This document shows, piece after piece, positions 8,857-60,987 of a stretch of 64,000 nucleotides of DNA. A program made the position numbers and the translations under genes. The notes beneath the pieces are model-generated. The model made no database searches and had not been told where the DNA came from. It was given only the letters and a program-made list of their open reading frames with translations. Within the stretch, counting starts at the first letter, position 1. Every line of letters starts with the position of its first letter. The DNA is taken from the sequence record MT612988.1. One strand, 5' to 3'.

Positions 8857-9097
8857 AATATACGTTGCCGTTGTTGATTGTTACTAAGAATGGCTTACCT
8901 GCGATATGATCACCGTAAATGTGAACAATATAATCACAAGCTTCTTTGTTCCATTCTTGCCAATCGGTTTGCAATTCAGCTTCCCATTCTTCTCGATTCG
9001 AAAAGAACGGCTTGCCTTTTGCCTCTCGCTTATCTAACGCAACAGCACGTTTTGCAAGTGCGCTATCAGCATGAATAATATAAGCTCGTTTAATCAT
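8798..9097 (-). CDS. Hypothetical protein, 99 aa
   Basis: ORF downstream of the promoter at 9130-9159. Confidence 0.65.
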   Translation of the reverse strand: MIKRAYIIHADSALAKRAVALDKREAKGKPFFSNREEWEAELQTDWQEWNKEACDYIVHIYGDHIAGKPFLVTINNGNVYFEENDVCYTNEKQPRSGDY

Positions 9098-9107
9098 AAT
9101 TAACCCA

Positions 9108-9159
9108 AAAAAGCCCCGACAGGAGCTTTATTATATGATGAATGTAAGACGTGTTAAAC
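9108..9159 (-). promoter_or_regulatory. GTTTAA-18-TATAAT promoter directly followed by a terminator hairpin
   Basis: -35 at 9154-9159, -10 at 9130-9135, hairpin aagctcc-tgtc-ggggctt plus T-run at 9108-9129. Confidence 0.6.
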
Positions 9160-9160
9160 T

Positions 9161-9754
9161 TTATTCGTGAATAAAATCTAATAGCTTTGACATATGATGA
9201 ACGTCTGCTCGTTCGTCATATCGATTGAGGTGTACCACTTTAAGGTCGTGAAAACACTTCTTGATTTGCTCAGTATTTTCTAACTGATCATCAATGAAAC
9301 CGATCACGTCGTGATCTGATACTAGCTGAGAGACATAACCGACTTTGCTCTCATCACCGCGAATAGTAATCAATTCGCTGAAACAACCCGGGAAGAATGT
9401 TTCTAAGTTGAACTTGCGCACAAGCCAGTGATCAGTTGAATCACCGAATTTAGTCAGCGCAACAAGATTGTATTCTTTCGCGATTTTGTGAACGTTCTCT
9501 ACCGCATCAGGGAACGCAGTCATGTACTTACCGTGCTCAAGATTATACTTCTCAAGTAAGTCAAATGCTATTGAACGCTGCTCGACACCGAATAAATCAC
9601 GTACGTCAACATGCTCTTTAGCAGTGAAGTGTTTTAATGCAAGAACGGGGTCGATACCACATCGCTTGCAGAATAGCGGTAGCTGGCTTGCCCAATCAAT
9701 AAGCACACCATCTACGTCGAAAATTAGAGTAGGTTTTTGTTTCTTGTCTGTCAT
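9161..9754 (-). CDS. HAD-superfamily hydrolase, T4 30.2-like (start ATG 9754)
   Basis: LIFDVDGVLIDW (DxD motif I), ALTKFG, FIDDQLEN (motif IV). Confidence 0.8.
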   Translation of the reverse strand: MTDKKQKPTLIFDVDGVLIDWASQLPLFCKRCGIDPVLALKHFTAKEHVDVRDLFGVEQRSIAFDLLEKYNLEHGKYMTAFPDAVENVHKIAKEYNLVALTKFGDSTDHWLVRKFNLETFFPGCFSELITIRGDESKVGYVSQLVSDHDVIGFIDDQLENTEQIKKCFHDLKVVHLNRYDERADVHHMSKLLDFIHE

Positions 9755-9767
9755 AATATATTTCTCG

Positions 9768-9965
9768 TTACATATATTCAGCGCCCGTGAAGACAATGAA
9801 CATAAAAGTAAAACAAAACACAGCAACAGCTACTAACAATGCAGTTACACTAGCTATCATTGAATCGAATTCGTCTTCAATAATCTTATTGACTACATAT
9901 ACTAATGGCGTTGCTGATACGAATACTAGAATAACACCTAGTGTTGCTAATAAAATTTGAATCAT
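9768..9965 (-). CDS. Small membrane protein with two hydrophobic segments
   Basis: MIQILLATLGVILVFV... and ...ALLVAVAVFCFTFMFIVF; GGAG SD. Confidence 0.7.
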   Translation of the reverse strand: MIQILLATLGVILVFVSATPLVYVVNKIIEDEFDSMIASVTALLVAVAVFCFTFMFIVFTGAEYM

Positions 9966-9991
9966 ATTGTGCTCCTTTATTTGAAGCATCT

Positions 9992-10027
9992 ATGATAATG
10001 AAAAGGGCTGCAAATTGCAACCCTTTT
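9992..10027 (-). promoter_or_regulatory. Early promoter TTGCAA-17-TATCAT with its -35 inside a terminator stem-loop
   Basis: aaaaggg-ttgcaatttgcag-ccctttt; -10 at 9992-9997. Confidence 0.65.
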
Positions 10028-10029
10028 GT

Positions 10030-10539
10030 TTATTTCATCCACTGTTTGCGCTTTTTAGAGCGTTTCCACCCGCGCTGTGGAGATTTGTAAGACGATAGAC
10101 CATCCCAATCTAGAAGACAGCGAACTGTATGAGCACGTTTTTTGCGAACTACTTTACCGTATTCGGCTTCAATCTCGTCTTCACAGAACTTGTTATGATG
10201 CATTTCAGACATCAAACCGTTACCGCGTCGAGCATGAATCCAGTTCTTGTAGCAACCAGTATGTGGCACTGGCGTGTAACGAAACACGTAGTTACCTTTG
10301 TAACGTGCTAGACATTCACCATTTCGAATTAGGTCAATCATACGTCTTGCGCTAGTTGACATGTAAAACCCAACACGTTCTGGGCTCCAGAAGCTCTGAT
10401 AACGAACGTATGTTCTAGCCCACTCAGGTACCCATTCACCATCCCATAATTCGAAAACATGATGAGGTCCCATTTCGCGTGAGTTGTATAGTGGTAGATC
10501 TTTTTCTTTTACGCCTTTGTATTTTTTGACTTCAGTCAT
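10030..10539 (-). CDS. Hypothetical protein with basic C-terminus
   Basis: 169-aa ORF with GGAG SD. Confidence 0.75.
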   Translation of the reverse strand: MTEVKKYKGVKEKDLPLYNSREMGPHHVFELWDGEWVPEWARTYVRYQSFWSPERVGFYMSTSARRMIDLIRNGECLARYKGNYVFRYTPVPHTGCYKNWIHARRGNGLMSEMHHNKFCEDEIEAEYGKVVRKKRAHTVRCLLDWDGLSSYKSPQRGWKRSKKRKQWMK

Positions 10540-10598
10540 CGTTGTTTCTCCAAGTTAAATTACTTAGTGAAACAACTCCTTACGATGAAATTTCTTCA

Positions 10599-10844
10599 TT
10601 ATTCAATTACCTCATACGCTTCGTTAAGGAAGTCATCAACATCATCTACGTTGATTTTGTCTTCATCTATTGCTAGTAAATCACATAGCAATTCTAAAAT
10701 ATCATGTTTACGAATTGTCCCATGACTGAATACAGTCTGACCAATCCATTCGGCTACCGACCAGTAATAGTCTTCAAAATCACCATCGCATTCGTAATTT
10801 GCTAGGTTGTACTGCTCTAGAAGCATATTCAAATCGTGCGTCAT
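10599..10844 (-). CDS. Acidic hypothetical protein, possibly late
   Basis: 81-aa ORF; ATTAAATA at 10878-10885. Confidence 0.7.
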   Translation of the reverse strand: MTHDLNMLLEQYNLANYECDGDFEDYYWSVAEWIGQTVFSHGTIRKHDILELLCDLLAIDEDKINVDDVDDFLNEAYEVIE

Positions 10845-24301: not shown

Positions 24302-25359
24302 TAAATTTTCTTCCATCTGTTAAGTCGATTTGTAGCCATTAGACCGCTAACGGCATTTTCATAAATGTATTGCTGAATGAACTCAGCAGATACACCAGCT
24401 TTGACAAAATCATTGATGTCTTTCTTATCAATAATTTGAGGTGGGAGCTTATCCCAAATAACAACACGCTCACCCGCTCTGATTAGAACTTGAAGACGCT
24501 TTACAACGTCTGGGTGGCGAGGCTCATTATCAAGCGCCCAAATGCGATTCCCCGCATAGGGTGCATTTTGTGGACTGACTTGTCCACCTACTATAGCACA
24601 GCAATTGTAGAGGAATAAACTATCAATCGGGCCCTCAACGAAAATAACAGGGTCATCTTCATTGATACGCTCTGTGCCGTATATCTTGTTGAAATCGTCG
24701 TCAATTTTAATGGTCATGTATCGTTGAGCATGTTTGTTTGTCAACGCACGACCTTGAACAGCAATCAAACCTTCTTTGTTATAGATAGGTATTACCAATC
24801 GAGGGTGGTCATTTCTAATCTCACCTTCGTACAAATCTGGGCGAAGCGTCTTAGCCATTTGAGACCAGCCACGAGTAAACCCAAGCAAATGCCACTTGTC
24901 TTTAGGGATTTTTCTAGATTCGAGGTATTTGTGCATCACATGACCATCTTTAAGGGCAGTGATATTATAGAAAAGTTGCTCTTCTTGTTCTTTCTCAACG
25001 ACAGTCGCTTCTTTCTTTTCAACGACTGGTTCAGGTTCGCGTTCTTTACGCTCACGAGAATTGCGCTCTTTGAATAACTCGACGCGATACTGAGAAAACA
25101 ACGATGGTTCGTGATCTTTCAAAAAAGTATACAGCGATTCGTTATAGTCACAGTTCCAGCAACTACAACGTAAATGAATCTCACCAGAACGTGTCTTAAC
25201 TTCATTAATCCAGAAACGTGTCTTGTACTTGTTCTTTTTCGAGTCACCACAAATCGGGCATCTTGCATTGATTTTGAATGGACGATGACTATGCACCGTA
25301 GGGAGTAGTAATCGATGCTGAAGCATCTTGGCGTATTGTATATCAATCAATATTTGCAT
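24301..25359 (-). CDS. 61: DNA primase gp61
   Basis: RCPICGDS...CWNC zinc finger, QGRAL, VEGPIDSLF, DNEPRH, KDIND. Confidence 0.96.
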   Translation of the reverse strand: MQILIDIQYAKMLQHRLLLPTVHSHRPFKINARCPICGDSKKNKYKTRFWINEVKTRSGEIHLRCSCWNCDYNESLYTFLKDHEPSLFSQYRVELFKERNSRERKEREPEPVVEKKEATVVEKEQEEQLFYNITALKDGHVMHKYLESRKIPKDKWHLLGFTRGWSQMAKTLRPDLYEGEIRNDHPRLVIPIYNKEGLIAVQGRALTNKHAQRYMTIKIDDDFNKIYGTERINEDDPVIFVEGPIDSLFLYNCCAIVGGQVSPQNAPYAGNRIWALDNEPRHPDVVKRLQVLIRAGERVVIWDKLPPQIIDKKDINDFVKAGVSAEFIQQYIYENAVSGLMATNRLNRWKKI

Positions 25360-25379
25360 AATTCAACCTCCGTGTAGTG

Positions 25380-25408
25380 ATTATACACGGCATCACGATA
25401 CGATAAAC
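25380..25408 (-). promoter_or_regulatory. GTTTAT-17-TATAAT promoter for primase
   Basis: -35 at 25403-25408, -10 at 25380-25385, GGAGG SD. Confidence 0.7.
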
Positions 25409-25410
25409 AT

Positions 25411-25432
25411 AAAAAAGCCCCGTTTCCGAGGC
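25411..25432 (-). terminator. Terminator of the late 3-gene operon
   Basis: gcctcg-gaaa-cggggc followed by T6. Confidence 0.8.
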
Positions 25433-25438
25433 GTTTTA

Positions 25439-25918
25439 TTATTCGAAATGTCTGAACTTCTTCAGCTTTTTCTTTTTCTTTTTCTTACCGATAGTTTCAG
25501 GACCTGCATTAGTTACAGCACCAGTCGTTTCACCAGAAGCAATCGACTCTGGTGAGCTACTACCGTCACCCGCATCACCTGCAACAACAGCTTCTTCGAC
25601 TCGAATACACTCTTTCGCGAAATCTTCAGATAACCCGTATTCTTTTGCAAGCTCAATCAGCAACAAATAAGACGCGCCATAATCAAGTGCTGTTTTACCA
25701 CCTGGTAATGCACCAACCATGCGCTTGATATTTCTCACAGTAACATGAAACATCGTCCAGTTACTTTTCTCTTGTGCAGTTACAGGGTCACGCAACTTCT
25801 TACCATCTGCGTCGATGATACCCATTCGATATGCTTCCCAACGTTCAAAACGAAGATGAAGCAAACGAGACAGACGAAGAGCATAAAAACCATCTGCACC
25901 ACGTTTAGCTACACTCAT
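25439..25918 (-). CDS. gp61.1-family protein with C-terminal gp23 N-arm-like segment and poly-Lys tail
   Basis: FYALRL...WEAYRMGIIDADG...TMFH...RNIKR recalled from the T4-like 61.1 family; adjacent to gp61. Confidence 0.7.
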   Translation of the reverse strand: MSVAKRGADGFYALRLSRLLHLRFERWEAYRMGIIDADGKKLRDPVTAQEKSNWTMFHVTVRNIKRMVGALPGGKTALDYGASYLLLIELAKEYGLSEDFAKECIRVEEAVVAGDAGDGSSSPESIASGETTGAVTNAGPETIGKKKKKKKLKKFRHFE

Positions 25919-26742
25919 TATGCCCCCAAGATTTGCTCAAGTTGACGATCAAAGATCTTCTCTGCTTCATCAAGTGGTAATGGTACGCTGCGCATGAATT
26001 CGTGCAGATTATCTTCGCGAATCAGATTTTCAATAGTACTAGATGGTACTTTGTTCTTGACTTCAACGATCTCGAATCGTGTTCCACCTACACGTAGGAA
26101 GTGACGACCTAGACGGCGATACTCAGCTACTTTGTTCGCTTCTACAAATGCAAACACGCGAGTGATACCTTTTTGAATCATAGTCTCTACTTCAGCAAAC
26201 ATCACGCCTTTCGGTGCAACATCGACATCAGAGAACGATTCAAATAATTCAACGCGCTCTTGAAGTGATAAAACCTTGTTCTGAGCCTCAGGTACAAACA
26301 CTTTACCAACAGCACCAACGTGTTCACACGCTTCAGATAATGTTTTAGTCAATTCTTTATGACCAACTGAAGGAATGCTTGAATCCACGTCCATGATACA
26401 CGCAGCGTCAATCGCACACTCATTCACAACGGTTTCATGTTCGAAGAAATCTTTTTCCGAAACGACAAATAGACCCTCATCAAGTTTAGCTGCAATTGCT
26501 TCAGCTTCTTGTTGTTGTTTCTTCATCGTTGCTTCTTCTTTTTCAGCAGCAGATTCTTTGTCAAACATGGTGATTTTGCCGCGAATTGCGTCTCGAACAC
26601 GAATGTCCATCATCGGTGTGATGTTCGCCCCGAGTTCTTTTTTCTTTTGCGTATATAGTTTCTCGATTTCAACTACACCGTCTTTGGTAGTACATTGGTG
26701 AACCGACGCAATAAGTTCTTCCAATTTATCTTTGATAGCCAT
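25918..26742 (-). CDS. UvsW.1-like domain fused to a degenerate cytidylyltransferase-like domain
   Basis: IASVHQCTTKDGVVEIEKLY...DIRVRDAIRGK versus T4 UvsW.1; C-terminal PSVGHKEL and SSTIENL...EFMRSVP. Confidence 0.55.
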   Translation of the reverse strand: MAIKDKLEELIASVHQCTTKDGVVEIEKLYTQKKKELGANITPMMDIRVRDAIRGKITMFDKESAAEKEEATMKKQQQEAEAIAAKLDEGLFVVSEKDFFEHETVVNECAIDAACIMDVDSSIPSVGHKELTKTLSEACEHVGAVGKVFVPEAQNKVLSLQERVELFESFSDVDVAPKGVMFAEVETMIQKGITRVFAFVEANKVAEYRRLGRHFLRVGGTRFEIVEVKNKVPSSTIENLIREDNLHEFMRSVPLPLDEAEKIFDRQLEQILGA

Positions 26743-26745
26743 TAG

Positions 26746-27591
26746 CTACTCCTCGTAAACAATCGTATTTTTAGTAATTCTTGATTCGAATACAACTTCA
26801 ACACGTACACCATAAGGCAATGCCTTAGAACGGCGACATGCATCATTTCTAATCAACATATACGGGTGATATACAGTATCTTTAATATCTTTCGCGTTCA
26901 ACAAAACATCACCGTTAATATGCAAGGTACCGCGTTTGAATACAAAATCATCTAGTGTAAAGCTATTGACTACAACAAGACCGTTATTGAGAATGTCTGA
27001 ACCAAATACAACATGATTTATTTCGTCGTCTCGTAGTCTGCGTGCGATTGGCTGGCTAAGTCTCTTCACTTTACCATCGTCAGAATAGTCCGATAATGTA
27101 ACCATCTTCTTGACTATCATTTGTGATAAAAGCTTACGAGCTTCAGTGCCGTGAATAACGTCAGTACTAGCCCAACGCTCGGCATTTGATTTTTTAATCG
27201 AAATCGGAAAATCGCCGCTTACGGTCTTCAATACCATATCGGCTTTTTTGTTGTTTTTTGTGTCGTGACCAGTCATTTCAATCGACTGAACACCTTTTAT
27301 TACTCGTCGACCAATTTTAATCCGAGTACAGCCAGAATCAATGTGTTGCTTTACAATATTATAGAAATTGCGTTCATTCTCGATGCCCGGATTAGATGTT
27401 GGTTTGACGTATACTCTGCATTTTTCCATCTGTATACAACCAATTGAACTGCCTGGGTCGCACTTCTTGTACGTCCCGTCAAGCTCTTTCGCAAGTTTAA
27501 CAATTAGACCAAGTCGATTTTCATCTGTGTAGATAACGATCTTTCGGCTATTGATAATTCTCGCGTCATATCTTAACAAAACATCTATCAT
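26746..27591 (-). CDS. PD-(D/E)xK nuclease-like late protein
   Basis: ENERNF...KADMVL...PISIKK pattern; late promoter and RBS-occluding hairpin upstream. Confidence 0.5.
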   Translation of the reverse strand: MIDVLLRYDARIINSRKIVIYTDENRLGLIVKLAKELDGTYKKCDPGSSIGCIQMEKCRVYVKPTSNPGIENERNFYNIVKQHIDSGCTRIKIGRRVIKGVQSIEMTGHDTKNNKKADMVLKTVSGDFPISIKKSNAERWASTDVIHGTEARKLLSQMIVKKMVTLSDYSDDGKVKRLSQPIARRLRDDEINHVVFGSDILNNGLVVVNSFTLDDFVFKRGTLHINGDVLLNAKDIKDTVYHPYMLIRNDACRRSKALPYGVRVEVVFESRITKNTIVYEE

Positions 27592-27593
27592 AG

Positions 27594-27642
27594 TGCATGA
27601 ACACCATCTTTAATACCATACCAGTATTTAGATGTTCATGCA
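27594..27642 (-). promoter_or_regulatory. Late promoter TCTAAATA (27625-27632) inside an RBS-sequestering hairpin
   Basis: Perfect 10-bp arms tgcatgaaca (27594-27603) and tgttcatgca (27633-27642), plus inner pairing. Confidence 0.8.
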
Positions 27643-27655
27643 GATAGACTACCAC

Positions 27656-28180
27656 TTAGAAGTCGTAACTTACCTCTTTGGACTCACGACGTTTGTCAAG
27701 AAGTTGTCGCAGATCAGTTAAACGAATCATCGGCTGACCGATGTTACGCTGCAAGTTATCACAACAAACGTTCACGTAACGATAGTCATCAATCGTTGCG
27801 TAATGCACGTGCCCGTGAATGCTGAAATGACCACGCAGTTCATCGGGGTGTAATGGAAAATGACTCAACCAACCCAACTTTTTGTACTTTTCACAACCGC
27901 GAATCACGTCAAACGCACGCATGTAGCTTGAAACAGGAAGATCGTCATGATTCCCGCCATATTGTACTTTACGACCCGGCAAACCAGCAAGAATTCCAAC
28001 AGCTTCTTCAGTAAATGCAGTATCACCAAGCATAATCACAGTGTCACGCTTGCGAACGTTCTTCAACCAGAAGTCAACAATCCAGTCGGTATTCGCTTGA
28101 GTGTCTTCAATGTCATCCCGAAACTTACCAATATTTTTGTGACCTAAATGCAGATCACTTGTAATCCAAACACAACTCAT
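27656..28180 (-). CDS. Calcineurin-like phosphoesterase
   Basis: SDLHLGH, LGD, GNHD, SHFP, HGHVH. Confidence 0.9.
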   Translation of the reverse strand: MSCVWITSDLHLGHKNIGKFRDDIEDTQANTDWIVDFWLKNVRKRDTVIMLGDTAFTEEAVGILAGLPGRKVQYGGNHDDLPVSSYMRAFDVIRGCEKYKKLGWLSHFPLHPDELRGHFSIHGHVHYATIDDYRYVNVCCDNLQRNIGQPMIRLTDLRQLLDKRRESKEVSYDF

Positions 28181-28656
28181 TAATTTCTCTCTTTATCAAT
28201 AACCATTTCATCATTTACCCGAACGTACAAGATTTGATTATCAGAGCCGCGCCACGCTTTCTGCGTTGGTTGATGTCTCTTGTATCGTCCGTCAATGAAA
28301 ACATCAATATAATTCATTATCTCTAAATGATAAACATGAGATAATTTGTAACCGCTCCACAACCAAATGTCTTTATCGGGATATCGCTCTTTCACTGATT
28401 TACAAATACGCAATATTTCGTCGCGATTGCTCGGGTGCAACGGGTCACCTCCTGAAAGACTCAGCCCATCGTGCTGCTCTAAGCTCGTCAAAACGTCTCT
28501 AAGCGTTTCTTCAGTGAAATCGATACCATCGTTCGAGTCCCACGTAGATTCGTTGTAGCAGCCCTTACAGCGATGCTCACAACCAGAAACGAAGATGCTC
28601 AATCGAACACCTTCGCCGTTTGCAAAATCAAATTCGTTAATCTTCTGATACTTCAC
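28180..28656 (-). CDS. nrdG: Anaerobic ribonucleotide reductase activase (radical SAM)
   Basis: NGEGVR, SGCEHRCKGCYN, LSGGDPL, DGRY, RGSDNQ. Confidence 0.95.
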   Translation of the reverse strand: MKYQKINEFDFANGEGVRLSIFVSGCEHRCKGCYNESTWDSNDGIDFTEETLRDVLTSLEQHDGLSLSGGDPLHPSNRDEILRICKSVKERYPDKDIWLWSGYKLSHVYHLEIMNYIDVFIDGRYKRHQPTQKAWRGSDNQILYVRVNDEMVIDKERN

Positions 28657-29239
28657 TTACCTGCCATCCCGCAAAAACATCAATATTGAGGCGACAAGAT
28701 TTTTTGATACCATCATTCGATACATGAACAATATTTTTGTTCATAGCTTCGCGTCGAGAAAATGTAAACGGTACATCATCTGCAACAACTGTGATGAAAT
28801 CATCATTACAAAACACAACTGTTGCTTCTTCTTGTCTCGGCTCGAATTGACAGTTCAAGTATACGTCAATCGTGTCACCTTCGTTGATACGAACATATTC
28901 CATCTTCGTTTCAATCGTTTCTTTATTGTATGACAGCACACCGTCGTGATTAAACAATTCTTGAAACGTTTCTCGTTCTTCAAAACGTGAAATGATACCA
29001 AAGCTAGAATTATCGCTGACTCGACTGCCTTGAACAATAAACGTCAAAGAACTCATATAATCATACAAAACACAGTCGCCAGTTTCGTCTTGATATATAA
29101 ATCGAGCATCTATAGTATCACTCGCACTTAAACTCAAGCTGCTACTACTCATAGGTTCGACGTATACTCTAACATCTTTACCAATTTCTAAAGCTGTCGG
29201 CGTGTATGTAGGTATTCTTCGTTCTTTTTGCGTAAACAT
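28637..29239 (-). CDS. Hypothetical protein
   Basis: 200-aa ORF. Confidence 0.7.
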   Translation of the reverse strand: MFTQKERRIPTYTPTALEIGKDVRVYVEPMSSSSLSLSASDTIDARFIYQDETGDCVLYDYMSSLTFIVQGSRVSDNSSFGIISRFEERETFQELFNHDGVLSYNKETIETKMEYVRINEGDTIDVYLNCQFEPRQEEATVVFCNDDFITVVADDVPFTFSRREAMNKNIVHVSNDGIKKSCRLNIDVFAGWQVSEVSED

Positions 29240-29240
29240 T

Positions 29241-29657
29241 TTAAAACTCCCAATTTATTTTAGACGTGTGACCATGTACTAACGTGCAACAGCCGCCCCG
29301 AACCCATTGACCAGACAACTTACGGCGATAGTATTTGCCACCCGTTGATGTCGTGATCATCTTCATTGTTTTTGAAATCTTCGTGATTACACCGTCGGGA
29401 TGACTGTCACCATTGAAACAATAGCTAACTGAATCACCTACACGTGGCTTTTTGATAATGTCAAAGCGCGGCAAGCAACCTGAACCTGCGTCCACAACCA
29501 TGTATAAATCTTGGTCGAGCATGTTGCAAACTTCAGTAACTCGCTCTAATGTTTTCCAATCTCTACGAGATTCAACAGTGTGACCCTCTTGGCGCCACTG
29601 TTCAGCTACTGAGTGTTCGTCGATAACGCTGCAAGTTGTCAAGTTGATGTATAGCAT
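29241..29657 (-). CDS. Hypothetical early protein (start ATG 29657)
   Basis: GAGAGAGAAACATTATG leader. Confidence 0.7.
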   Translation of the reverse strand: MLYINLTTCSVIDEHSVAEQWRQEGHTVESRRDWKTLERVTEVCNMLDQDLYMVVDAGSGCLPRFDIIKKPRVGDSVSYCFNGDSHPDGVITKISKTMKMITTSTGGKYYRRKLSGQWVRGGCCTLVHGHTSKINWEF

Positions 29658-29774: not shown

Positions 29775-31610
29775 TTAACAGTGTTTAACTCGATTTTGCA
29801 TTTCGACAGTCTTGCCGTGATTCCACCCACGAGCACCCGGGTTACCGAGATAACCGCAGACACGTCTCGTTACATTGAGCTTTTCAGGGTCGCGTTCACC
29901 ACAAACAGGACAAGAATAACCCAGCGAATCACCATGAGCTTCACCAGACCAACCACACGTACACTGATCAATCGGGGTATTCGTACCGAAGTAAGCTACT
30001 TTAGTGTAAGCATAATCCCATACGCGCTCTAGACCTTTGATGTTATCTCGCATATTCGGGAACTCAGCATAACAGATGAAACCACCGTTTGCATGAATTG
30101 GGTATGCAGCTTCAAAATCAATTTTCTCAAATGGGTTAACTTTCTTGAACACGTCTAAGTGAAACGAGTTTGTGTAATAGTCTTTGTCATTGATACCTGT
30201 AATGACACCGTATTTCTCTTGGTCGAGACGACAGAAACGATCACACAGCGATTCACTTGGTGTACTGTACAGACTGAAACCGTAGCCCGTCAGTTCTTTC
30301 CATGCATCTGTGTACGCTCTAAGAGTTTCCACAATCTTTTCAGCGAGGAATTGTTTGTGCTGTGACTCAAACGTATGCATGTCTTTATCTGGCGAAAGCA
30401 ACGTTACTGCTTCGTGTAACCCGATATAACCAAGCGAGATACTTGAACGACCGTGTTTGAAAACTTCACTGACTTTATCAGTTGGCTTCAAGCGCACGCC
30501 CATTGCACCTTCACAGTATAGAATCGGAGCAACTGATGCAGTTACATCATCAAAACGCTTAATACGCAACATCAATGCTTCGTAAGCTAGTGTACAACGC
30601 TCGTGTAAGATCTCGAAGAAGCGTTCAGTATCACCCGATGCTTCAATAGCAATACGCGGGATATTGATTGAGACGACGCCTAAGTTATTACGACCATCGA
30701 ATACCGTTTCACCATCTTCGTTCTTCCAGTCACCCAAGAATGAGCGACAGCCCATTGGAGACTTAAACCCACCAGTCGTTTCAACTAGTTTGTCATAGTT
30801 CAAAATGTCTGGGTACATACGCTTACTTGCACATTCAAGAGCTAACTTTTTGATGCCGTAGCACGGGTCGCCTTCTTTTAGGTTCACGCCGTCTCTCAAT
30901 GTGAAAACAAGCTTAGGGAAAATAGCAGTTTTCTTAGTCTTACCTAGACCTGCAATACGATTCTGAAGAATACTTTTTTGAATAAGTTTTTCTTCCCACG
31001 ACGTACCTAACCCGAAGTTGATTGTCGTGAATGGTGTCTGACCGTTTGAAGTCTGCATCGTATTGACTTGATATTCAAACGTCTGGAATGCATCGAACGT
31101 TTCCTTTTCAACACGCTTTCGTGCAAAGATAGCAGCTTTAGAATCAGAGTCGGGATGTTCTTCGCGACCTACTTCGAGCCATTTATAATATGACTTACGA
31201 ACATAAGGTGCTAGGACTTCGTCGATTCTATTGATCGTGTTACCGCCGTAGATATGGCTACTTACTTGCTGAATAATCTGAGTTACAACAGTGGCAGCAG
31301 TGCTAATACTGTTTGGTTCTTCGATTTCAGCATTACCCATTTTGAAACCGCCTTCAAACATGCCTTTGATATCAATAAGCATACAGTTGAATTGCGGGAA
31401 TAATGGGCTGTAGTCAAGGTCATGAAAATGAATATCGCCGTCGATATGTGCATCTGCAATATGCTTCGGTAGATAGTCTTCAAGTGCGTAATGTTTCGAC
31501 ACTGTGCCAGCTACTAAGTCACGCATTGTAGGGATTACTTTCGAATCTTTATTTGCATTCTCTTTGTTGTTACCCGAACCGCTAACAATGTCTAAAATGT
31601 CGTGTTTCAT
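29775..31610 (-). CDS. nrdD: Anaerobic ribonucleoside-triphosphate reductase (uninterrupted)
   Basis: IHFHDLDY, NCMLI, PMGCRSFL, GRNNLGVVSIN, PSESLC, CPVCG, RRVCGYLG. Confidence 0.97.
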   Translation of the reverse strand: MKHDILDIVSGSGNNKENANKDSKVIPTMRDLVAGTVSKHYALEDYLPKHIADAHIDGDIHFHDLDYSPLFPQFNCMLIDIKGMFEGGFKMGNAEIEEPNSISTAATVVTQIIQQVSSHIYGGNTINRIDEVLAPYVRKSYYKWLEVGREEHPDSDSKAAIFARKRVEKETFDAFQTFEYQVNTMQTSNGQTPFTTINFGLGTSWEEKLIQKSILQNRIAGLGKTKKTAIFPKLVFTLRDGVNLKEGDPCYGIKKLALECASKRMYPDILNYDKLVETTGGFKSPMGCRSFLGDWKNEDGETVFDGRNNLGVVSINIPRIAIEASGDTERFFEILHERCTLAYEALMLRIKRFDDVTASVAPILYCEGAMGVRLKPTDKVSEVFKHGRSSISLGYIGLHEAVTLLSPDKDMHTFESQHKQFLAEKIVETLRAYTDAWKELTGYGFSLYSTPSESLCDRFCRLDQEKYGVITGINDKDYYTNSFHLDVFKKVNPFEKIDFEAAYPIHANGGFICYAEFPNMRDNIKGLERVWDYAYTKVAYFGTNTPIDQCTCGWSGEAHGDSLGYSCPVCGERDPEKLNVTRRVCGYLGNPGARGWNHGKTVEMQNRVKHC

Positions 31611-31856
31611 TCATTCCTCTTCTAACAATTTGTCGATGCGAGATAAGACGCTCACACCCTCGCCTAGACATTCGCCATTGTAAAACGCTATTGGGTGGGC
31701 AATATAACCATCATCTTCAGCGATTTTCTGAAGTTCTTTATAGCGTTCACTAGGAACAAATGCGTCATAAAAAATATGTTTAATGTTTCTATCATTTAGC
31801 GAGTCGCACAACTTGCGACAAGCTAAACAATATTTTGACCCGATAATCTCTACCAA
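31611..31856 (-). CDS. Glutaredoxin/thioredoxin-like protein
   Basis: GSKYCLACRKL (CxxC), HPIAFYNG; next to nrdD; GTG start. Confidence 0.75.
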   Translation of the reverse strand: MVEIIGSKYCLACRKLCDSLNDRNIKHIFYDAFVPSERYKELQKIAEDDGYIAHPIAFYNGECLGEGVSVLSRIDKLLEEE

Positions 31857-33250
31857 TTTACCGCCTCTGCTTTCTGCGTCTGTTCTTTCTTCTGCGCGAA
31901 AGGAGTCGCCGATTGCGTTTGAGATTGAGCAGGCGCCGTATAACTCGCAGTACCATCTACATCACCCCAACGTTGTTTACCTTTGTTAACAGCAATCATA
32001 AATGTCTGGTCTTGGTTACGGTCAGCATAACGAGACTTAATCTGTTTCACTCGTTGTTGCCCGAGCGCGACAGTTTCTTCAGTTTCCATAATACCGAGAA
32101 TCAAGTCAGCAGTATGAGCAAGACCAGCCGATTCAGCAATATCACCCATTCCCATGTCACTTGCATCCCATGCGTTACGTGTAGTCTGAGCAGCAGACCA
32201 AACAGCAACGTTATGTTCAACAGCAAAACCACGAATTTCTTCAGCAATAGCTTTAACGTGAACGTATGTATTTTCTGAACTTGCAACACGTGAACTTGCA
32301 CAGATACCAAGATAATCGACAATCACAATGTCTGGGATTACGTCTTTCTTGGTGCGAAGCTCATTCATCAACGTATTGAAGTGAGTTACATTCGCGCCCG
32401 CAGTCGGGAACTGTTTAATGAATAATTTACCTTGAGTTTTCTTCTCAAGATTCTGAATCTTAGTGCCGTATGTTTTTTCAGTAATAGTATCGAAATCGTC
32501 CATACTGATGTCCATTAAGTTGGCATCAATACGCTTCGACACTGCCGCTTCACTCATTTCCATACTGATGTATAGAACGTTGTAGCCTTGTAGAAGATAC
32601 TCAGTTGCTAAATGACACAACGCAAGTGATTTACCCACGTTAGAACCCGCTAGAAGTAGGTTCAGAGTACTTCTTTCAACACCACCTTGAGTGATCTTGT
32701 TTAAAATGTTCATTTTGAATGGGATTTTTGCTGCTTTCTCGATATACGATTTGTATCGAGGTTCCCAATCTGCAAAATAATCATGACCAACTGATGTGTC
32801 AAAACAAACGTTCAATGCATCACGCATCAAATCGGGAATCGCACCAAGCGTTTTCATTCGTTTGTTTTGTTGATCAAGTGGTTTAGCTGCATTCTCTTGA
32901 ATAGCAAGTGATTCACTAAGCGCGTTAAAAACGCTCTGTTCGATACAGAACTGTTCAGTCGTGTCAATCAACCATCTCAGGTCGTGACTCGGGTGAGGTT
33001 CTAGTTCATTTATTGTTTGTTGTATCTCTGCATAGTCGTATTCACTAATCCCTGTCAATGACTCAAGACATACTTTCAAAACTTCAGGTGTCGCACGACG
33101 TTTGTACTCGTCTGCGTGGTTCTTAATCATCATAAAGATATGCTGATGAGCAGTTGACTGAAAGTATTCTTTTTTCAAGTGAGGGATTACGGTAGCAAAG
33201 TACTCTTGATTTTCGATAAGATTTGAGAAAATCGACTTCTCGATTTGCAT
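31850..33250 (-). CDS. 41: Replicative helicase gp41
   Basis: AGSNVGKS (Walker A), LYISMEM, IVDYLGI, SAAQTTR, KQIKSRY. Confidence 0.97.
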   Translation of the reverse strand: MQIEKSIFSNLIENQEYFATVIPHLKKEYFQSTAHQHIFMMIKNHADEYKRRATPEVLKVCLESLTGISEYDYAEIQQTINELEPHPSHDLRWLIDTTEQFCIEQSVFNALSESLAIQENAAKPLDQQNKRMKTLGAIPDLMRDALNVCFDTSVGHDYFADWEPRYKSYIEKAAKIPFKMNILNKITQGGVERSTLNLLLAGSNVGKSLALCHLATEYLLQGYNVLYISMEMSEAAVSKRIDANLMDISMDDFDTITEKTYGTKIQNLEKKTQGKLFIKQFPTAGANVTHFNTLMNELRTKKDVIPDIVIVDYLGICASSRVASSENTYVHVKAIAEEIRGFAVEHNVAVWSAAQTTRNAWDASDMGMGDIAESAGLAHTADLILGIMETEETVALGQQRVKQIKSRYADRNQDQTFMIAVNKGKQRWGDVDGTASYTAPAQSQTQSATPFAQKKEQTQKAEAVNW

Positions 33251-50946: not shown

Positions 50947-50974
50947 AAAAGGGTGACTTCGGTCGCCCTTTTTT
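50947..50974 (+). terminator. Terminator
   Basis: gggtgac-ttcg-gtcgccc followed by T6. Confidence 0.9.
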
Positions 50975-50982: not shown

Positions 50983-50990
50983 TCTAAATA
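50983..50990 (+). promoter_or_regulatory. Late promoter TCTAAATA
   Basis: Directly after the terminator, 22 nt before ATG 51013. Confidence 0.75.
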
Positions 50991-51012: not shown

Positions 51013-51606
51013 ATGATAGAATTTTTAACAGAAATGGACAAAGCTAAACAAACCGGTAGATGGGCTCAATTTAAAGCAGCAACATCGGGTTCGAAAGGTG
51101 AAGTTAAAAAGCGTATGCAGCGCAAAGGTGGCTTCTGGGGTGTGTTTGCAGGTTTGATCGCGAGTGCGACAGCATCGGGTGAACTTAGAAAGCACAATAA
51201 GTCACTAGAAGACCATAAGCTAAGAATGGAGCGTGCAGCAGTGAACACAATTCACAGTCTGAATGTTCTTAAAGACGTAATCGAGCTTGAACGTCCTCGT
51301 GACGAAGTAATGAAAGCTGCAAAGCGTTTAAAGCTTGATAACATGGAAATGAAGAAATACGCAACCGAAATGATTCGTGTCGTAGATGAATACAAGCGTG
51401 TTCATGACGAAGATAAGAAGGCAGGTGCGTTTCGTTTTAATGTGAAAGAATACGACCGTCATGATTTTCGTGAGATTTACCATCACTTGAACATGATTGA
51501 AGATAGCACATTTTACGTCGATAAAGCAGCGTCATCGGCTATGACTGGCGATACTGAATACGCAATTCGTATGATTCGCAATATTACAAACGCAGCAACG
51601 AGGTAA
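51013..51606 (+). CDS. Hypothetical late helical protein with CTS-like N-terminus (MIEFLTE)
   Basis: FLTE is the sequence preceding the T4 gp23 cleavage site; late promoter. Confidence 0.75.
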   Translation: MIEFLTEMDKAKQTGRWAQFKAATSGSKGEVKKRMQRKGGFWGVFAGLIASATASGELRKHNKSLEDHKLRMERAAVNTIHSLNVLKDVIELERPRDEVMKAAKRLKLDNMEMKKYATEMIRVVDEYKRVHDEDKKAGAFRFNVKEYDRHDFREIYHHLNMIEDSTFYVDKAASSAMTGDTEYAIRMIRNITNAATR

Positions 51607-51608: not shown

Positions 51609-52529
51609 ATGAGCATAATTTTTGAACGCGCTACATTGAAAACTCGAAAAGGTAGTGCAGTAAAACGCAGCAAGTGGGGCGTGGGTAAAGACATTGGCGG
51701 TTCATTATATGTTCACATTGACTATATACCAGATGAGTTCAAGCAAATGGTTGCTGATGCTCGTACTCAAGTATCAATTGCAAACCCACAATTTACTCCG
51801 AATGTAGTACGAATTGACTACAAGAAAGGTGGAGTTGCCTTCTACGATTCAGTTGAATTTGATACTGTACAAGAACCAGCCGCGGGTATGATGATTACTT
51901 ACAGAGACGGTGTTGTTTCTAAACCACGTCAAGTAAACCAAATATGGCATCACAAATGGTTGTGGGTTGGTGATGATTATAGAGGGTTTGATACTTCTCA
52001 GTCATATGACCGCTCGGCTCAGTGGCTAGATCATGACGATATCCCATTTGCCAAGATCGGTAATAAGAAGACATGGCGTGAATGGTTATCTTCAGTTAAC
52101 TTGACTGAGGCATTTGACCGACCATCTAAAATACACTGGGTTGAGAAGAGAATTCACAGTTGGGGTGGTACGTTCACGGTAAACGGGGACGAATACGCGA
52201 TTGCAATACAGTATCAAGAACAAAACGATGCATGGGAACTTGTGTTCTTAGGTATGAACAGTTCGGGTGATTATACTTACAGCGCAACAGGTCGAGGCAA
52301 TATGTATGGTGTGTTTGCGACAGTAATGAGCGGTATGCGTGAATTTATAGACGAGCGAGAGCCAGAAACAATTTATTTCAGTGCAGAGCGAGATATAAAA
52401 AACGACAGTGATTCGAGAATAAAACTATACAATCGTTTAGTAAAACGATATGCTGATACATTACCGAATTACACATATAAAACGGTCGAAGGGAAAGTCT
52501 CGACTAAAACATATTTCATTAGAAAATAA
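51609..52529 (+). CDS. Two-domain late protein: PT-associated-MTase-like domain plus AFDRP domain
   Basis: VGKDIGGSLYVH...IWHHK...IGNKKTW; internal LTE167|AFDRP. Confidence 0.75.
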   Translation: MSIIFERATLKTRKGSAVKRSKWGVGKDIGGSLYVHIDYIPDEFKQMVADARTQVSIANPQFTPNVVRIDYKKGGVAFYDSVEFDTVQEPAAGMMITYRDGVVSKPRQVNQIWHHKWLWVGDDYRGFDTSQSYDRSAQWLDHDDIPFAKIGNKKTWREWLSSVNLTEAFDRPSKIHWVEKRIHSWGGTFTVNGDEYAIAIQYQEQNDAWELVFLGMNSSGDYTYSATGRGNMYGVFATVMSGMREFIDEREPETIYFSAERDIKNDSDSRIKLYNRLVKRYADTLPNYTYKTVEGKVSTKTYFIRK

Positions 52530-52593: not shown

Positions 52594-52619
52594 AAAAAGC
52601 GCATTTTTGCGCTTTTTTT
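52594..52619 (+). terminator. Terminator
   Basis: aaaaagcgca-tttt-tgcgcttttttt. Confidence 0.85.
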
Positions 52620-52701: not shown

Positions 52702-53886
52702 ATGACTTCACTAAACAAATTCGAAAACACTTACACAATCAAATCAATCTACATGAGCGAGTTTGAAGCGCGTATTGCATCTACTAACAAGATTGCAAAA
52801 CGTCTCGGTGTTGCTGAAATTACATTTGAGTTCGGTGAAGTGTACTCAAAAGTCATTATTATCAATCACCAAAAGCATCGTGAATACTACGTTGATGTTA
52901 CTATTCGCGGTGAATACCCGTCAACTAAAGGTTGGTCTTTCTTGACTCAACTTGACCACGCGACAAATCTTATTCGTTCAAACAACGAAACAAATCACCG
53001 TCATCTTCTAGGCGACACAACATGCGATCACTGTAACTCTAATCGTCAACGCAATGTAACTTACGTCATTCAGAATGAAGAGACTAAAGAAGAAATGCGC
53101 GTCGGTGGTTCATGCTTGAAATACTACTTGCCGACTAAATCTATCGACTCACTAGCGACGTTCTACACTGCAATCGCTGATTTCGGTGATGAAGAGTCTT
53201 GGGGTGGTGGTTCTCGTAAAATTTCATATAACGCGCTTCAGATTCTTGCTTGGGCTGCTATGTATGTTGAACACAAAGGTTGTTATCACGGTGGCGGTGT
53301 GACTCGTCAATGGGTTCTTGACATGATTAATGCAGGTACACCTGCACTTCGTACCGAACGCGATGCAATGTTAGATGAATATGATTACGACAATTGTGAA
53401 GAGCAAGCAAAAGAGATTTTAGAATGGGTTGCAACTCAAGAAGCGACTAACGATTTCATGCATAACGTCATCGCGTCTTGTTCTGCACCATTCATCGAGT
53501 ACAAACAAACTGGTTACATTGCAGCGGCTATCTTAGCTTTCAACAAAGCAAAAGAGCGCGAGATTCTAGCTAAACGCGAAGCTGAACGTAAAGCAGATTT
53601 GCCAGAATCTGAGTACGTCGGTACTATCAAAAAACGCGAGAACTTTAATGTCACTCTTGAAGCGGTTATCGTTTCTGAAGGCTACTACGGTGACACGTTC
53701 ATTCACAAGTTTCGCGATGAACAAAACAATCTAATCGTGTGGTTTGGTTCAAAGCGTCTACGTGATAACGACGGCGAAGCGATTGAGAAAGGCGTTTCAG
53801 TAACTGTAAAAGCGACTGTAAAAGCGCACGAAGAGTTTCGCGACGAAAAACAGACAATCGTACAGCGTGTAGCGTTCGTCGCTTAG
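52702..53886 (+). CDS. Early protein with Cys motif (CDHC...SCL) and C-terminal OB-fold-like domain
   Basis: CDHCNSNRQRN; YVGTIKKR...YGDTFIHKF...VKATVKAH..FRDEKQT. Confidence 0.6.
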   Translation: MTSLNKFENTYTIKSIYMSEFEARIASTNKIAKRLGVAEITFEFGEVYSKVIIINHQKHREYYVDVTIRGEYPSTKGWSFLTQLDHATNLIRSNNETNHRHLLGDTTCDHCNSNRQRNVTYVIQNEETKEEMRVGGSCLKYYLPTKSIDSLATFYTAIADFGDEESWGGGSRKISYNALQILAWAAMYVEHKGCYHGGGVTRQWVLDMINAGTPALRTERDAMLDEYDYDNCEEQAKEILEWVATQEATNDFMHNVIASCSAPFIEYKQTGYIAAAILAFNKAKEREILAKREAERKADLPESEYVGTIKKRENFNVTLEAVIVSEGYYGDTFIHKFRDEQNNLIVWFGSKRLRDNDGEAIEKGVSVTVKATVKAHEEFRDEKQTIVQRVAFVA

Positions 53887-54287: not shown

Positions 54288-54782
54288 CTATTTAATTGTG
54301 ATGAATTGACTGTTGCGAGTTTCACGCACTAGCACCTTGCCGTCTTTATCGACATAATGCAAGATTGATTTAACTACGCGAAGATCTGATGCAAGTACAT
54401 CATCAAGCGAACCATCCCCTGCGATAATAGCTTTCGCAGATTTAACCGCGCTATCAGAAGCAGTCATGAAAAATTCACGACCACGACGGAATGGCAATGG
54501 CATAGGTTCGAATGAATCATCTTTTGGTAATTCAACTACCACTTCTTTCGTCTCGACTGGTTTAGTCTCAACAATCGGATCAGGTTTATCTTCAGTTTCC
54601 ACTAGAAGTTCTTCCCACGGTAATTGTTTAAGAGGCGTTTTAGTCTCAGCTTCTTCGACAAGCTTCTTAGCCATTGCGCCTTTTGATTTACGACGATCAA
54701 GTTCGACGCCGTAATATTCTTTTGCAAACTCATCAAGTTCAGCTTTCGTTAATGACTCTGCATGTGTTTTCAATTGACTCAT
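54288..54782 (-). CDS. inh: Inhibitor of prohead protease Inh
   Basis: C-terminal ILHYVDKDGKVLVRETRNSQFITIK resembles T4 Inh; AATAAATA upstream at 54813-54820. Confidence 0.82.
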   Translation of the reverse strand: MSQLKTHAESLTKAELDEFAKEYYGVELDRRKSKGAMAKKLVEEAETKTPLKQLPWEELLVETEDKPDPIVETKPVETKEVVVELPKDDSFEPMPLPFRRGREFFMTASDSAVKSAKAIIAGDGSLDDVLASDLRVVKSILHYVDKDGKVLVRETRNSQFITIK

Positions 54783-56695: not shown

Positions 56696-57793
56696 ATGAA
56701 AGCGAAAATGAACTTAATGCGAAAATACATTGTCGGTGGCGCAGTACGCGACTCTATACTGAAACACGTAGAGGGCTGGTCTAGATTCCCGAAAGATATT
56801 GATTACGTCGTCACTGGTTGTACACACGAACAAATGATGGCTATGTACGGCGAACCTATCGGTGCTGATTTCCCTGTTTGGCTAGATCGAAACAACAATG
56901 AAGTCGCGCTTGCTCGTGTTGAACGTAGCACTGGTGACAAAACTACTGACTTCACTTTCACAACTGATGGGGTCACGTTAGAAGATGACTTATCACGTCG
57001 AGATCTGACTATCAACTCAATGGCTATACCTGACATGACGCCAAATAGTCTGTTTATGTTTGGTTCAACTGATGATGTCATCGACCCGTACGGCGGTCTA
57101 GATGACTTGAAGAACAAGATTCTCCGTCATACAACTGAAGCGTTTGCCGAAGACCCGTTGCGTGTTCTGCGCGTCGCTCGTTTCTATGCTCGATACTACA
57201 GCATGGGATTTACAGTCGCAGAAGAGACAGTTGAGCTATGCAAGAAAATGATCAACGACGGTATGCTTGAGAATCTGCCGAAAGAACGTGTTTGGCTTGA
57301 AACACAAAAAGCACTGTCAGAAAAAGACGCGCACATGTACTTTGCATTCTTAGGTCAAGTGGGATTCTGTGCTGCACCATCTGCACGCGAACTACTTGAG
57401 TTGAAGTACTACAACCGTATGCCATTTAAATGCGAAGACGTTCAGATGATTGCTAAGTGGGCATCGTTTGATCATCGTAATCGTTACACTCGTAAGTTCG
57501 GTGCGACTAAGCAGTATGACAAAGCATCTGAGTTGCTGATGTCACTTAACGTTGCAAATGTATTCGACGAGACTATTGTAATTGTATTGCGTAAGCTAGG
57601 TGCATATAAAGAAGGTCTTCCGTTTGAAGTTGCGCTATCACAAGTGAAAGATGTTGTGAAGCGTCAAATTATTACCGATTTGATTGAACTGACACGCAAT
57701 GTCAAAGTAGACGTTGAGCCGGGCCCTGAATATGGTGCAGCATTAGAAGACGCACGAATGACAATCGCATACGATTATTTGCATTGTCTATAA
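56696..57793 (+). CDS. cca: Class II tRNA nucleotidyltransferase (CCA-adding)
   Basis: VGGAVRD, DIDYVV, EDDLSRRDLTINSMA, DPYGGLDDL, EDPLRVLRVARF. Confidence 0.93.
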   Translation: MKAKMNLMRKYIVGGAVRDSILKHVEGWSRFPKDIDYVVTGCTHEQMMAMYGEPIGADFPVWLDRNNNEVALARVERSTGDKTTDFTFTTDGVTLEDDLSRRDLTINSMAIPDMTPNSLFMFGSTDDVIDPYGGLDDLKNKILRHTTEAFAEDPLRVLRVARFYARYYSMGFTVAEETVELCKKMINDGMLENLPKERVWLETQKALSEKDAHMYFAFLGQVGFCAAPSARELLELKYYNRMPFKCEDVQMIAKWASFDHRNRYTRKFGATKQYDKASELLMSLNVANVFDETIVIVLRKLGAYKEGLPFEVALSQVKDVVKRQIITDLIELTRNVKVDVEPGPEYGAALEDARMTIAYDYLHCL

Positions 57794-60342: not shown

Positions 60343-60350
60343 TATTTATA
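60343..60350 (-). promoter_or_regulatory. Late promoter TATAAATA (gp22)
   Basis: Exact consensus overlapping the gp21 stop. Confidence 0.8.
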
Positions 60351-60987
60351 AGAGAGTTTTTAACGTTTCCGCTAGTTTCGCAAATTCAGCGTCATTACTT
60401 TCTGTAATTTCTTCTGTTTTTACTGACTTAGCAGCTTCATTTGACTCAGTTACTGGTTTAACGTAAGCAGCAGGTGCACTAGGACCCCACACTACATCAA
60501 CGCCTACTGTAAGACGGAAATCTTGCACTTCGTTGATGCCGTCAACTTGCTTAACTGAACCAAGACCTCTTGAACTCACGCCCGGTACCCAACCACCTTC
60601 GATCAGACCTCGAACTATTTGTCCCTTCGGTGTATTTAGTACGATAGCTTTACCCATTACGTTATCGCCGTCCCACCACAACTCAGTAATTCGAATCGCA
60701 GCTTCAGCGGGGTCAACGTTTGAACGACTTGGGTGATTAAGCTCGCCCAACGCTTGATTCGTGTTGACTTGTTCTTTCATGTATTTAGATACAGCATTTT
60801 CCATGACTTTTTTCGGGTATCGACGACCATTACGGTTTACGACATTCGATTGCATGAAAATACCTTCGATGTACAAGTCACCGCCCTTTTCCGTGGGCAT
60901 TTTCGCTTCAACAAGAGGCTTTTCACCGAAGCTATCAGCGCAACCGCTAGATAAACCCCAGTCTTCAATTAAGAGTTGTAATTCCAT
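60346..60987 (-). CDS. 21: Prohead protease gp21
   Basis: IEGIFMQ, NRNGRRY, GELNHP, GVSSRGLGS, DVVWGPSAP. Confidence 0.97.
   Translation of the reverse strand: MELQLLIEDWGLSSGCADSFGEKPLVEAKMPTEKGGDLYIEGIFMQSNVVNRNGRRYPKKVMENAVSKYMKEQVNTNQALGELNHPSRSNVDPAEAAIRITELWWDGDNVMGKAIVLNTPKGQIVRGLIEGGWVPGVSSRGLGSVKQVDGINEVQDFRLTVGVDVVWGPSAPAAYVKPVTESNEAAKSVKTEEITESNDAEFAKLAETLKTLL

Follow-up and report, generated by a model that had tools for sequence, protein, structure and literature searches.

A late two-module protein of the KVP40-like vibriophage R10Z as a candidate precursor of head-internal proteins, with an N-terminal domain related to part of TIGR04096

Small proteins that T-even bacteriophages inject into the cell put host defences out of action, and their repertoire keeps changing; outside T4 itself almost none have, to our knowledge, been identified. 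The 64,000-nucleotide stretch analysed here, hereafter the window, is 100% identical to the genome of Vibrio phage vB_ValM_R10Z (Schizotequatrovirus, KVP40-like; position 1 of the window is position 62001 of record MT612988.1), and one of its genes raises the question of whether a protein of this kind is encoded there. This gene, an open reading frame (ORF) of 306 amino acids (aa), was confirmed at 51609..52529 of the plus strand, is labelled in the record as hypothetical protein vBValMR10Z_188, falls into phrog_16075 and has KVP40.0371 as its KVP40 homolog; the corresponding protein of phage nt-1 shows 85% identity. The reading that we favour, with moderate confidence, is that its product is a late, head-targeted precursor which would be trimmed after E6 and split after E167, giving two injected proteins that act at DNA entry.

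The five motifs that the first-pass annotation had noticed in the N-terminal part of the protein were all located as claimed, namely VGKDIGGSLYVH (residues 25-36), PNVVRI (64-69), VEFDTVQEP (82-90), QIWHHK (111-116) and KIGNKKTWREWL (149-160). The triplet LTE ends at residue 167 and AFDRP begins at residue 168, as had also been indicated, and the second domain proved to be a paralog of another product of the window, since residues 164-300 matched the N-terminal part of ORF 6388..7269 by BLASTP (E 1e-12, 31% identity). The structure model, obtained with AlphaFold2 on an alignment of 27 relatives (mean predicted local distance difference test, pLDDT, 85.6), showed two domains predicted with confidence, while residues 1-6 were disordered (pLDDT<50) and a coil linker at residues 163-175 contained the LTE/A junction (a slash marks a predicted cut here and below); the linker block 161-170 had a mean pLDDT of 69. 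The Pfam scan of the 306-aa protein yielded neither a methyltransferase nor an S-adenosylmethionine-binding domain, in agreement with the earlier remark that the corresponding motif is lacking, and no Rossmann-type region was present in the model.

The N-terminal domain, referred to as the HHKW domain, occurs alone in many phages and metagenomes as a protein of ~160-175 aa. In vibriophages 1.081.O and D479 its gene ends 1-3 residues past the equivalent Glu and no C-terminal module follows. Because these two phages carry the N-terminal domain without the C-terminal module, the fusion of both is, as judged from the genomes compared, specific to the KVP40 group. It is also mosaic with respect to KVP40 itself: the N-terminal domain is 97% identical, the C-terminal module shows 41 identities over 122 aligned positions, and the DNA matches in two pieces.

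It has been described for T4 that the internal proteins and Alt reach the prohead core via short N-terminal targeting peptides, that leader residues 4 and 7 matter most for targeting and residues 8 and 10 for processing, and that gp21 cuts after Glu, Alt losing a propeptide of 7 residues. The internal proteins of T-even phages have been reported as a diverse anti-restriction set with the targeting sequence alone in common. In the window, four ORFs start with M(S)I.F followed by (L/I)xE, which are those of the Alt homolog, the 293-aa paralog (6388..7269), the 197-aa partner of the gene under study and the 306-aa protein itself. The leader pattern M-x-[IML]-I-F-E was kept in all close homologs of the latter. 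Since the leader is absent in 33 of the 98 relatives that have the HHKW domain at their N-terminus, it is not a part of the HHKW fold. The 53 distinct leaders of 5-20 residues contained [LI]xE in 34 cases, against 10.9 ± 2.6 after shuffling (maximum 19, 2000 shuffles), and in 28 of the 53 the triplet ended in the last three residues of the leader, against 5.4 ± 2.1; these leaders come from representatives of 50%-identity clusters and are not independent, and the shuffling is to be read as an indication, not as a probability. Several leaders of the family are exact 10-mers with hydrophobic residues at positions 4 and 7, L or I at position 8 and E at position 10, the very positions described for the T4 targeting peptide.

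Regarding the internal site, NL[ST]E[AS] was conserved in all fused homologs, a second LIE or FSE being found in the longer linker of two of them, and the stand-alone versions of the N-terminal domain end 1-3 residues past the conserved Glu. The gp23 propeptide of the same phage presents QLIE/AF and GLNE/AV. In several IMG/VR contigs a homolog of gp23 or of gp21 is encoded no more than 8 kb away from the N-domain gene, and for the gp21-type protease this holds in 5 IMG/VR loci, one of which is that of this phage group. In addition, the protein EST35_0349 of phage PA5oct (141 aa), a stand-alone homolog of the C-terminal module, is annotated as a structural protein found in virions by electrospray ionisation tandem mass spectrometry. 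Packaging and cleavage thus appear to be well motivated, a prohead-protease cut at the domain junction is plausible, and the polyprotein idea of the earlier annotation may be regarded as supported.

The assignment of the gene to a late unit was likewise borne out. A terminator, the T4-type late-promoter-like box TCTAAATA, the 197-aa gene, the 306-aa gene and a second terminator follow one another (Table 1). The pattern T.TAAATA has 4 matches in all on the plus strand of the window, the box TCTAAATA at 50983 among them, and the identical variant is also found upstream of the short tail fibre gene (39204). The perfect box TATAAATA precedes gp23, gp22, gp24 and the gene of the 293-aa paralog.

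Four paralogs of the C-terminal module are encoded in the genome, two in the window and two in tandem at record 30798..32595. All four have [AS][FL][DN]R[PA] immediately after LxE, and the junctions after the leader in the other three are TLIE/AFDRP, ELTE/AFNRA and RLNE/SLDRP. The topology predicted for the module is four strands, helix, strand, helix and two strands. In a Foldseek search with the full model the top matches were all GNAT acetyltransferases (probability up to 1.0, E 2e-3 to 1e-2, target template modelling score, TM, ~0.4). Pfam gave for this module a sub-threshold match to DUF6934 alone (24.2 bits against a cut-off of 27) and none to GNAT families, and the loop before helix 3, with which GNATs bind acetyl-CoA, shows no conservation among the paralogs. 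No matches were obtained when the module alone was used in a word-based search, and no functional data on DUF6934 were found in the literature. We read the module as GNAT-like and, probably, non-enzymatic. With its rapid diversification, its several copies and its constant position directly behind a predicted protease site, this four-gene family might play a role comparable to that of the variable internal proteins of T-even phages.

To delimit the HHKW family, a profile of the N-terminal domain was searched against 1.84 billion representative sequences. At E<=0.001 it recovered 1104 proteins, of which 814 also passed E<=1e-10, so that the family comprises at least 1104 clusters, mostly phage-borne. 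Residues G26, K27, H114, H115, K116, W117, V120, Y124 and F127 were invariant in 67 stand-alone relatives, and G26, K27, the HHKW run (114-117), Y124 and F127 were so also in 65 multidomain relatives. H36, F84 and D85 were nearly invariant in both sets, and for E89 and for P90 one set showed full and the other near invariance. No Pfam model, including those from the study on polyvalent proteins, matched the domain either in the window protein or in its relatives; the NCBIfam scan of the window protein was empty even at E<=10, and the PADLOC defence models (Dnd, Ssp and others) gave no match to the window protein and no meaningful one among 67 family members. A PLD-type HxK motif, an RNase A/EndoU-type His-His-Lys arrangement, ligase motif I and a PUA-like reader fold were considered and rejected, as they did not fit the predicted secondary structure and had no Foldseek match. 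We infer that the HHKW domain has an enzymatic function, or binds a ligand at the least, and that it acts on nucleic acid, its most likely substrate, during genome entry, either in counter-defence or in take-over of the host. Giant proteins of 2,000-6,400 residues also contain it. P0038, P0041, P0089 and similar ones (3,000-6,400 aa; locus L012) have a single HHKW domain in the middle of the protein; Pfam scans of P0038 and P0041 revealed almost no recognisable domains, apart from a DnaJ domain in one, and the gene context of one giant protein was uninformative.

The HHKW domain had been likened in the first-pass annotation to the non-catalytic part of TIGR04096, the putative methyltransferases associated with DNA phosphorothioation. 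This likeness stands at the family level, and for the non-methyltransferase C-terminal region; it does not for the window protein itself, which gave no match at E<=10. Thirty-one of the 67 stand-alone relatives individually matched TIGR04096 (best E 3.9e-10), no other family recurred, and the matches fell at model positions ~316-474 (316-460, 364-436, 409-474, 322-460), that is, at the non-methyltransferase end. When the profile of the HHKW family was compared by hhalign with the C-terminal 186 columns of 24 TIGR04096-like proteins, the alignment spanned 145 columns with 96.6% probability and an E of 4.9e-10. In the test against the full-length model, the curated cut-off of which is 150 bits, both the window protein and its N-terminal domain alone remained unmatched at E<=10. 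In the aligned TIGR04096 proteins H36, the FD/FE motif and P90 are kept, whereas K27, E89 and the His pair are replaced. From these alignments the phage protein is a relative of one TIGR04096 domain and not a TIGR04096 member. Because K27, E89 and the His pair are kept in the HHKW family and replaced in the aligned TIGR04096 proteins, an active HHKW domain with a degenerate copy inside the methyltransferase would be a better fit than a shared passive recognition domain. The earlier description of the domain as a non-catalytic DNA-recognition module is weakened by this replacement and by the invariance of G26, K27 and the HHKW run in the family.

A scan of one genome per prokaryotic species gave 61 cellular HHKW loci, overwhelmingly of Planctomycetota. 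The HHKW domain and a TIGR04096-like protein shared one ORF at 13 of these loci and lay within 1.2 kb at 21, together 34/61. Two such proteins are authentic TIGR04096 (593 and 567 bits), and that of 567 bits has an extra HHKW domain after the complete model match; the fusion in the Rhodopirellula ORF is given by the ORF itself and by its NCBIfam scan. Literature searches on TIGR04096 and its product name found no functional data, and 'dnd-associated' is a neighbourhood label of this uncharacterised family. The sole bacterial island examined in detail is that of Stieleria tagensis (NZ_JAMYFE010000069, 1452..10606; loci L023/L074), which contains genes for a PAPS-reductase-like protein, DUF1232, two DGQHR/DndB-family proteins, an SNF2 helicase with weak similarity to DpdE, DrmD and ZorD, TIGR04096, ScoMcrA_N and the HHKW protein, followed by an ORF that by eye is transposase-like. 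The island has the appearance of a so far undescribed system of Planctomycetota for modification or defence. Relatives of its DndB/DGQHR proteins were found at 4/61 cellular loci and of its PAPS-reductase-like protein at 7/61; no dnd-type genes were detected at the phage locus. The C-terminal tail of the bacterial HHKW proteins looks, by eye, like a helix-turn-helix.

In phages, the HHKW domain shares one ORF with a class-I methyltransferase in 20 of 63 distinct N-domains and with a CCA-adding-type nucleotidyltransferase in 7/63. Further fusion partners are GNAT (a genuine GNAT domain in 3 of the 65 mid-size relatives), Tpt1/KptA, NFACT-R, YafQ-like, HD, ART-PolyVal, LPD38 and ParB_N domains. 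A homolog search with P0094, one of the methyltransferase-fused proteins, did not reach the named TIGR04096 proteins, its matches covering only the N-terminal ~130 residues. This region is common to the metagenomic proteins P0094 (methyltransferase plus HHKW) and P0174-P0181 (GNAT plus Phage_L5_gp82-like), which suggests another interchangeable delivery or anchoring module; the model PF25735 (Phage_L5_gp82), found on proteins that share the P0094 N-terminus, does not correspond to the HHKW domain.

With regard to RNA enzymes, a CCA-adding enzyme gene is located at 56696..57793 (+) of the window, ~4 kb from the N-domain gene. The equivalent gene of phage D479 (L005, 3522..4625) adjoins the N-domain gene in convergent orientation, and in other phages it is fused to the domain. 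On a T4-like metagenomic contig (L007, 6089..8525) a TROVE (Ro60-like) gene stands just upstream of the N-domain gene, and ART-PolyVal and PolyA_pol genes lie ~7-8 kb downstream. R10Z also encodes RNA ligase 1 (Rnl1), RNA ligase 2 (Rnl2), polynucleotide kinase (Pnk) and a macro-domain protein, and by its gene content is equipped with a tRNA-repair kit. Outside the window, at record ~24522..29280 (L155), QueC, QueF-like, GTP cyclohydrolase I and QueD-like genes accompany an unannotated 458-aa gene; because this 7-deazaguanine gene set is present, the DNA of R10Z may be deazaguanine-modified.

Table 1. Position of the 306-aa gene, its parts and the related features (window coordinates unless the record is named; a slash within a sequence marks the predicted cut)
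Feature	Position	Strand	Remarks
306-aa ORF, second gene of the two-gene unit	51609..52529	+	vBValMR10Z_188
Leader MSIIFE, residues 1-6, putative capsid-targeting/processing peptide	51609..51626	+	Predicted disordered; ends in I-x-E
N-terminal HHKW domain, residues 7-167	51627..52109	+	
Inter-domain coil linker, residues 163-175	52095..52133	+	Predicted site NLTE167/AFDRP (cut 52109/52110)
C-terminal module, residues 168-306, GNAT-like fold	52110..52526	+	Fast-evolving; one of four genomic paralogs
Intrinsic-terminator-like hairpin	50947..50972	+	11-pair stem and T run; ends the upstream unit
T4-type late-promoter-like box TCTAAATA	50983..50990	+	22 nucleotides upstream of the 197-aa gene
Partner gene, 197 aa, phrog_16422	51013..51606	+	No Pfam match; leader MIEFLTE/M; hydrophobic stretch at ~residues 40-57
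Terminator-like hairpin, end of the two-gene unit	52594..52617	+	
Paralog, 293 aa, phrog_6387	6388..7269	-	Leader MIIFEHGETLIE/AFDRP, shared module, then unrelated C-terminal half
Late box TATAAATA of the 293-aa paralog	7301-7294	-	
Tandem paralogs outside the window (L155), 291 and 306 aa	record 30798..31673 and 31675..32595	- and -	Leaders MKFSEYQNELTE/AFNRA and (V/M)KFSEYQRLNE/SLDRP
gp21-type prohead core protease, proposed cutter	60346..60987	-	Record annotation
Alt-like ADP-ribosyltransferase	4727..6355	+	Leader MIGFQQLNE/N; reference for head-targeted cargo in the window

In KVP40, 1.081.O and D479 the 197-aa partner gene comes immediately before the N-domain gene. It always precedes this gene in Schizotequatrovirus genomes, and a co-packaged protein, a chaperone or an inhibitor are options for its product. 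The next gene downstream of the unit (52702..53886, +, 394 aa, phrog_2319) has its own sigma-70-like promoter at 52631-52659 and Cys/His-rich stretches (CDHC ... SC) of possible metal binding, and two related IMG/VR contigs (L137, L138) encode a relative of its product (E 1e-24) in the neighbourhood of the N-domain gene. Two genes annotated as 'prohead protease inhibitor' flank the gene block in KVP40 (3301..3849 and 8763..9254 of locus L002), and one gene alone is so annotated in R10Z (window 54288..54782).

According to the favoured reading, the 306-aa protein would be made late in infection by this T4-type phage, as the precursor of proteins that lie inside the head and are ejected from it. 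Its leader MSIIFE would take it into the scaffolding core, where a gp21-type prohead protease would cut the leader off after E6 and the exposed linker after E167. The expected products are an HHKW-domain protein of ~160 residues and a GNAT-like protein of ~139 residues starting with AFDRP, and both would leave the head with the DNA at infection. A further proposal, which we put forward tentatively as possible rather than probable, is that HHKW represents a new enzyme fold working with a methyltransferase on modified nucleic acid, that the Planctomycetota pair constitutes an undescribed system of modification/restriction type, and that T4-like phages have captured its active half and load it into their heads by means of a targeting leader. 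If so, the head-loaded HHKW protein would act within seconds of DNA entry, its target being either a modification of host or phage DNA (phosphorothioate or 7-deazaguanine) or the ends of tRNAs.

Several points weigh against the head-internal precursor. Packaging, cleavage and ejection rest on comparison only, and a virion proteome of KVP40-like phages was not found in the literature. The leader has 6 residues, against the 10 reported for T4 internal proteins. The 306-aa protein contains 3 [LI]xE triplets where ~2-3 would be expected by chance, according to our own estimate from composition, so that the argument for cleavage rests on the position and conservation of the sites and not on their number; and NL[ST]E is also found at the end of unfused relatives, where it is possibly a structural feature of the domain tail. 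As for the activity of the HHKW domain, Foldseek with the N-domain model found nothing below E 0.2 in the PDB and a single unnamed homologous protein in BFVD, and profile searches of PDB sequences gave no match. With no PDB relative and only that unnamed homolog, no chemistry can be assigned to the domain. Its context is moreover two-sided, with DNA-modification islands in bacteria against tRNA/RNA enzymes in the phage fusions.

Some of these points would suit an ordinary cytoplasmic late protein, neither packaged nor cleaved, whose (L/I)xE triplets and AFDRP would be leftovers of gene fusion: the short leader, the number of [LI]xE near chance, the lack of a KVP40-like virion proteome in the literature and an evident fusion history, with unfused versions in 1.081.O and D479. 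We nevertheless consider it improbable in view of the [LI]xE enrichment in leaders across the family, the leader that ends exactly before the module in all four paralogs, the late promoter before the unit with head genes nearby, and the virion-detected homolog of PA5oct. It is very unlikely that both halves stay together as a bifunctional enzyme with an active GNAT acetyltransferase as its C-terminal half. The Foldseek matches to GNAT enzymes and the true GNAT domains fused to HHKW in a few relatives would agree with this, but the E and TM values of those matches are modest, Pfam offers DUF6934 below threshold and no GNAT, the acetyl-CoA loop is not conserved among the paralogs, and the C-terminal module has been swapped independently of the N-terminal domain.

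The remaining alternatives concern what the freed N-terminal domain would do. As an RNA- or tRNA-directed enzyme it could repair or modify tRNA ends together with the CCA-adding enzyme, RNA ligases and polynucleotide kinase of the phage. The CCA-adding-type fusions, several of which have a 10-residue targeting-type leader, argue for such a role, and so do the fusions to Tpt1/KptA, NFACT-R, YafQ-like RNase and HD domains, the TROVE, ART-PolyVal and PolyA_pol genes of the T4-like contig, the proximity of the CCA-adding gene in the window and in D479, and the presence of Rnl1, Rnl2 and Pnk in the phage. We regard it as unlikely, however, since domains joined in one injected multi-domain protein may belong to different pathways, the bacterial context resembles DNA modification, and the main fusion partner is a methyltransferase with no substrate assigned. 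The first-pass annotation had instead proposed a non-catalytic DNA-recognition module, injected to coat the phage DNA or to serve as a decoy for Dnd/Ssp restriction. Vibrio hosts commonly carry Dnd/Ssp systems. The homology with the C-terminal region of TIGR04096, possibly the target-recognition part of that enzyme, the helix-turn-helix-like tail of the bacterial HHKW proteins and the one island with DndB/DGQHR and ScoMcrA_N are all compatible with this proposal. No positive evidence for it emerged, however: conservation in the HHKW family against replacement in the TIGR04096 proteins examined is opposite to the pattern expected if both served in recognition alone, no PADLOC model was matched, the 'dnd' label is one of neighbourhood, DndB-like genes accompany the cellular loci in 4 cases only, and the family reaches far beyond dnd neighbourhoods, occurring widely in phages and there with fusion partners of very different kinds. 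We consider it highly doubtful.

This locus provides a candidate set of injected proteins for KVP40-like vibriophages, made up of a conserved two-gene late unit, a fast-evolving module family of four members and an enzyme-like domain. The HHKW domain has more than 1000 clusters and yet no Pfam model, solved structure or literature, and its coupling with TIGR04096 in bacteria gives the first testable functional partner for both proteins. Through this domain, a phage protein that would be injected is tied to a bacterial nucleic-acid-modification module.

Among the known systems, the 306-aa protein resembles IPI, IPII, IPIII and Alt of T4 in late expression, a short (L/I)xE leader, a gp21-type protease gene nearby, variable mature parts and several paralogs, and an Alt homolog with a similar leader is found in the window. 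It differs from the T4 internal proteins in its leader of 6 residues instead of 10, in having two folded modules and a second predicted site, as in a polyprotein, and in the lack of sequence similarity to any of them; its own packaging is a prediction from comparison. With TIGR04096 it shares an N-terminal domain homologous to one end of the model and a bacterial pairing, fused or adjacent, at more than half of the cellular loci; in contrast, it has neither a methyltransferase domain nor a match to the model, and K27, E89 and the His pair are replaced in the TIGR04096 proteins examined. Polyvalent proteins and those of the phage P1 DarB type recall the giant HHKW proteins, the fusions to ART-PolyVal, LPD38 and ParB_N and the theme of a methyltransferase with extra domains as cargo, whereas the 306-aa protein has just two modules and a T4-type leader, and its HHKW domain has no Pfam match. 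The C-terminal module resembles the GNAT fold and DUF6934 in the order of strands and helices, in its best structural matches to GNAT enzymes and in its weak DUF6934 score, although it stays below every curated threshold and its cofactor loop is not conserved. Finally, the ejection proteins of phiKZ/SPN3US-type giant phages are head proteins in which a short motif is likewise cleaved behind its Glu, in some of them at several sites, and the fragments stay in the head; these proteins come from another phage lineage, have A/S-x-E as motif and show no homology with the protein described here.

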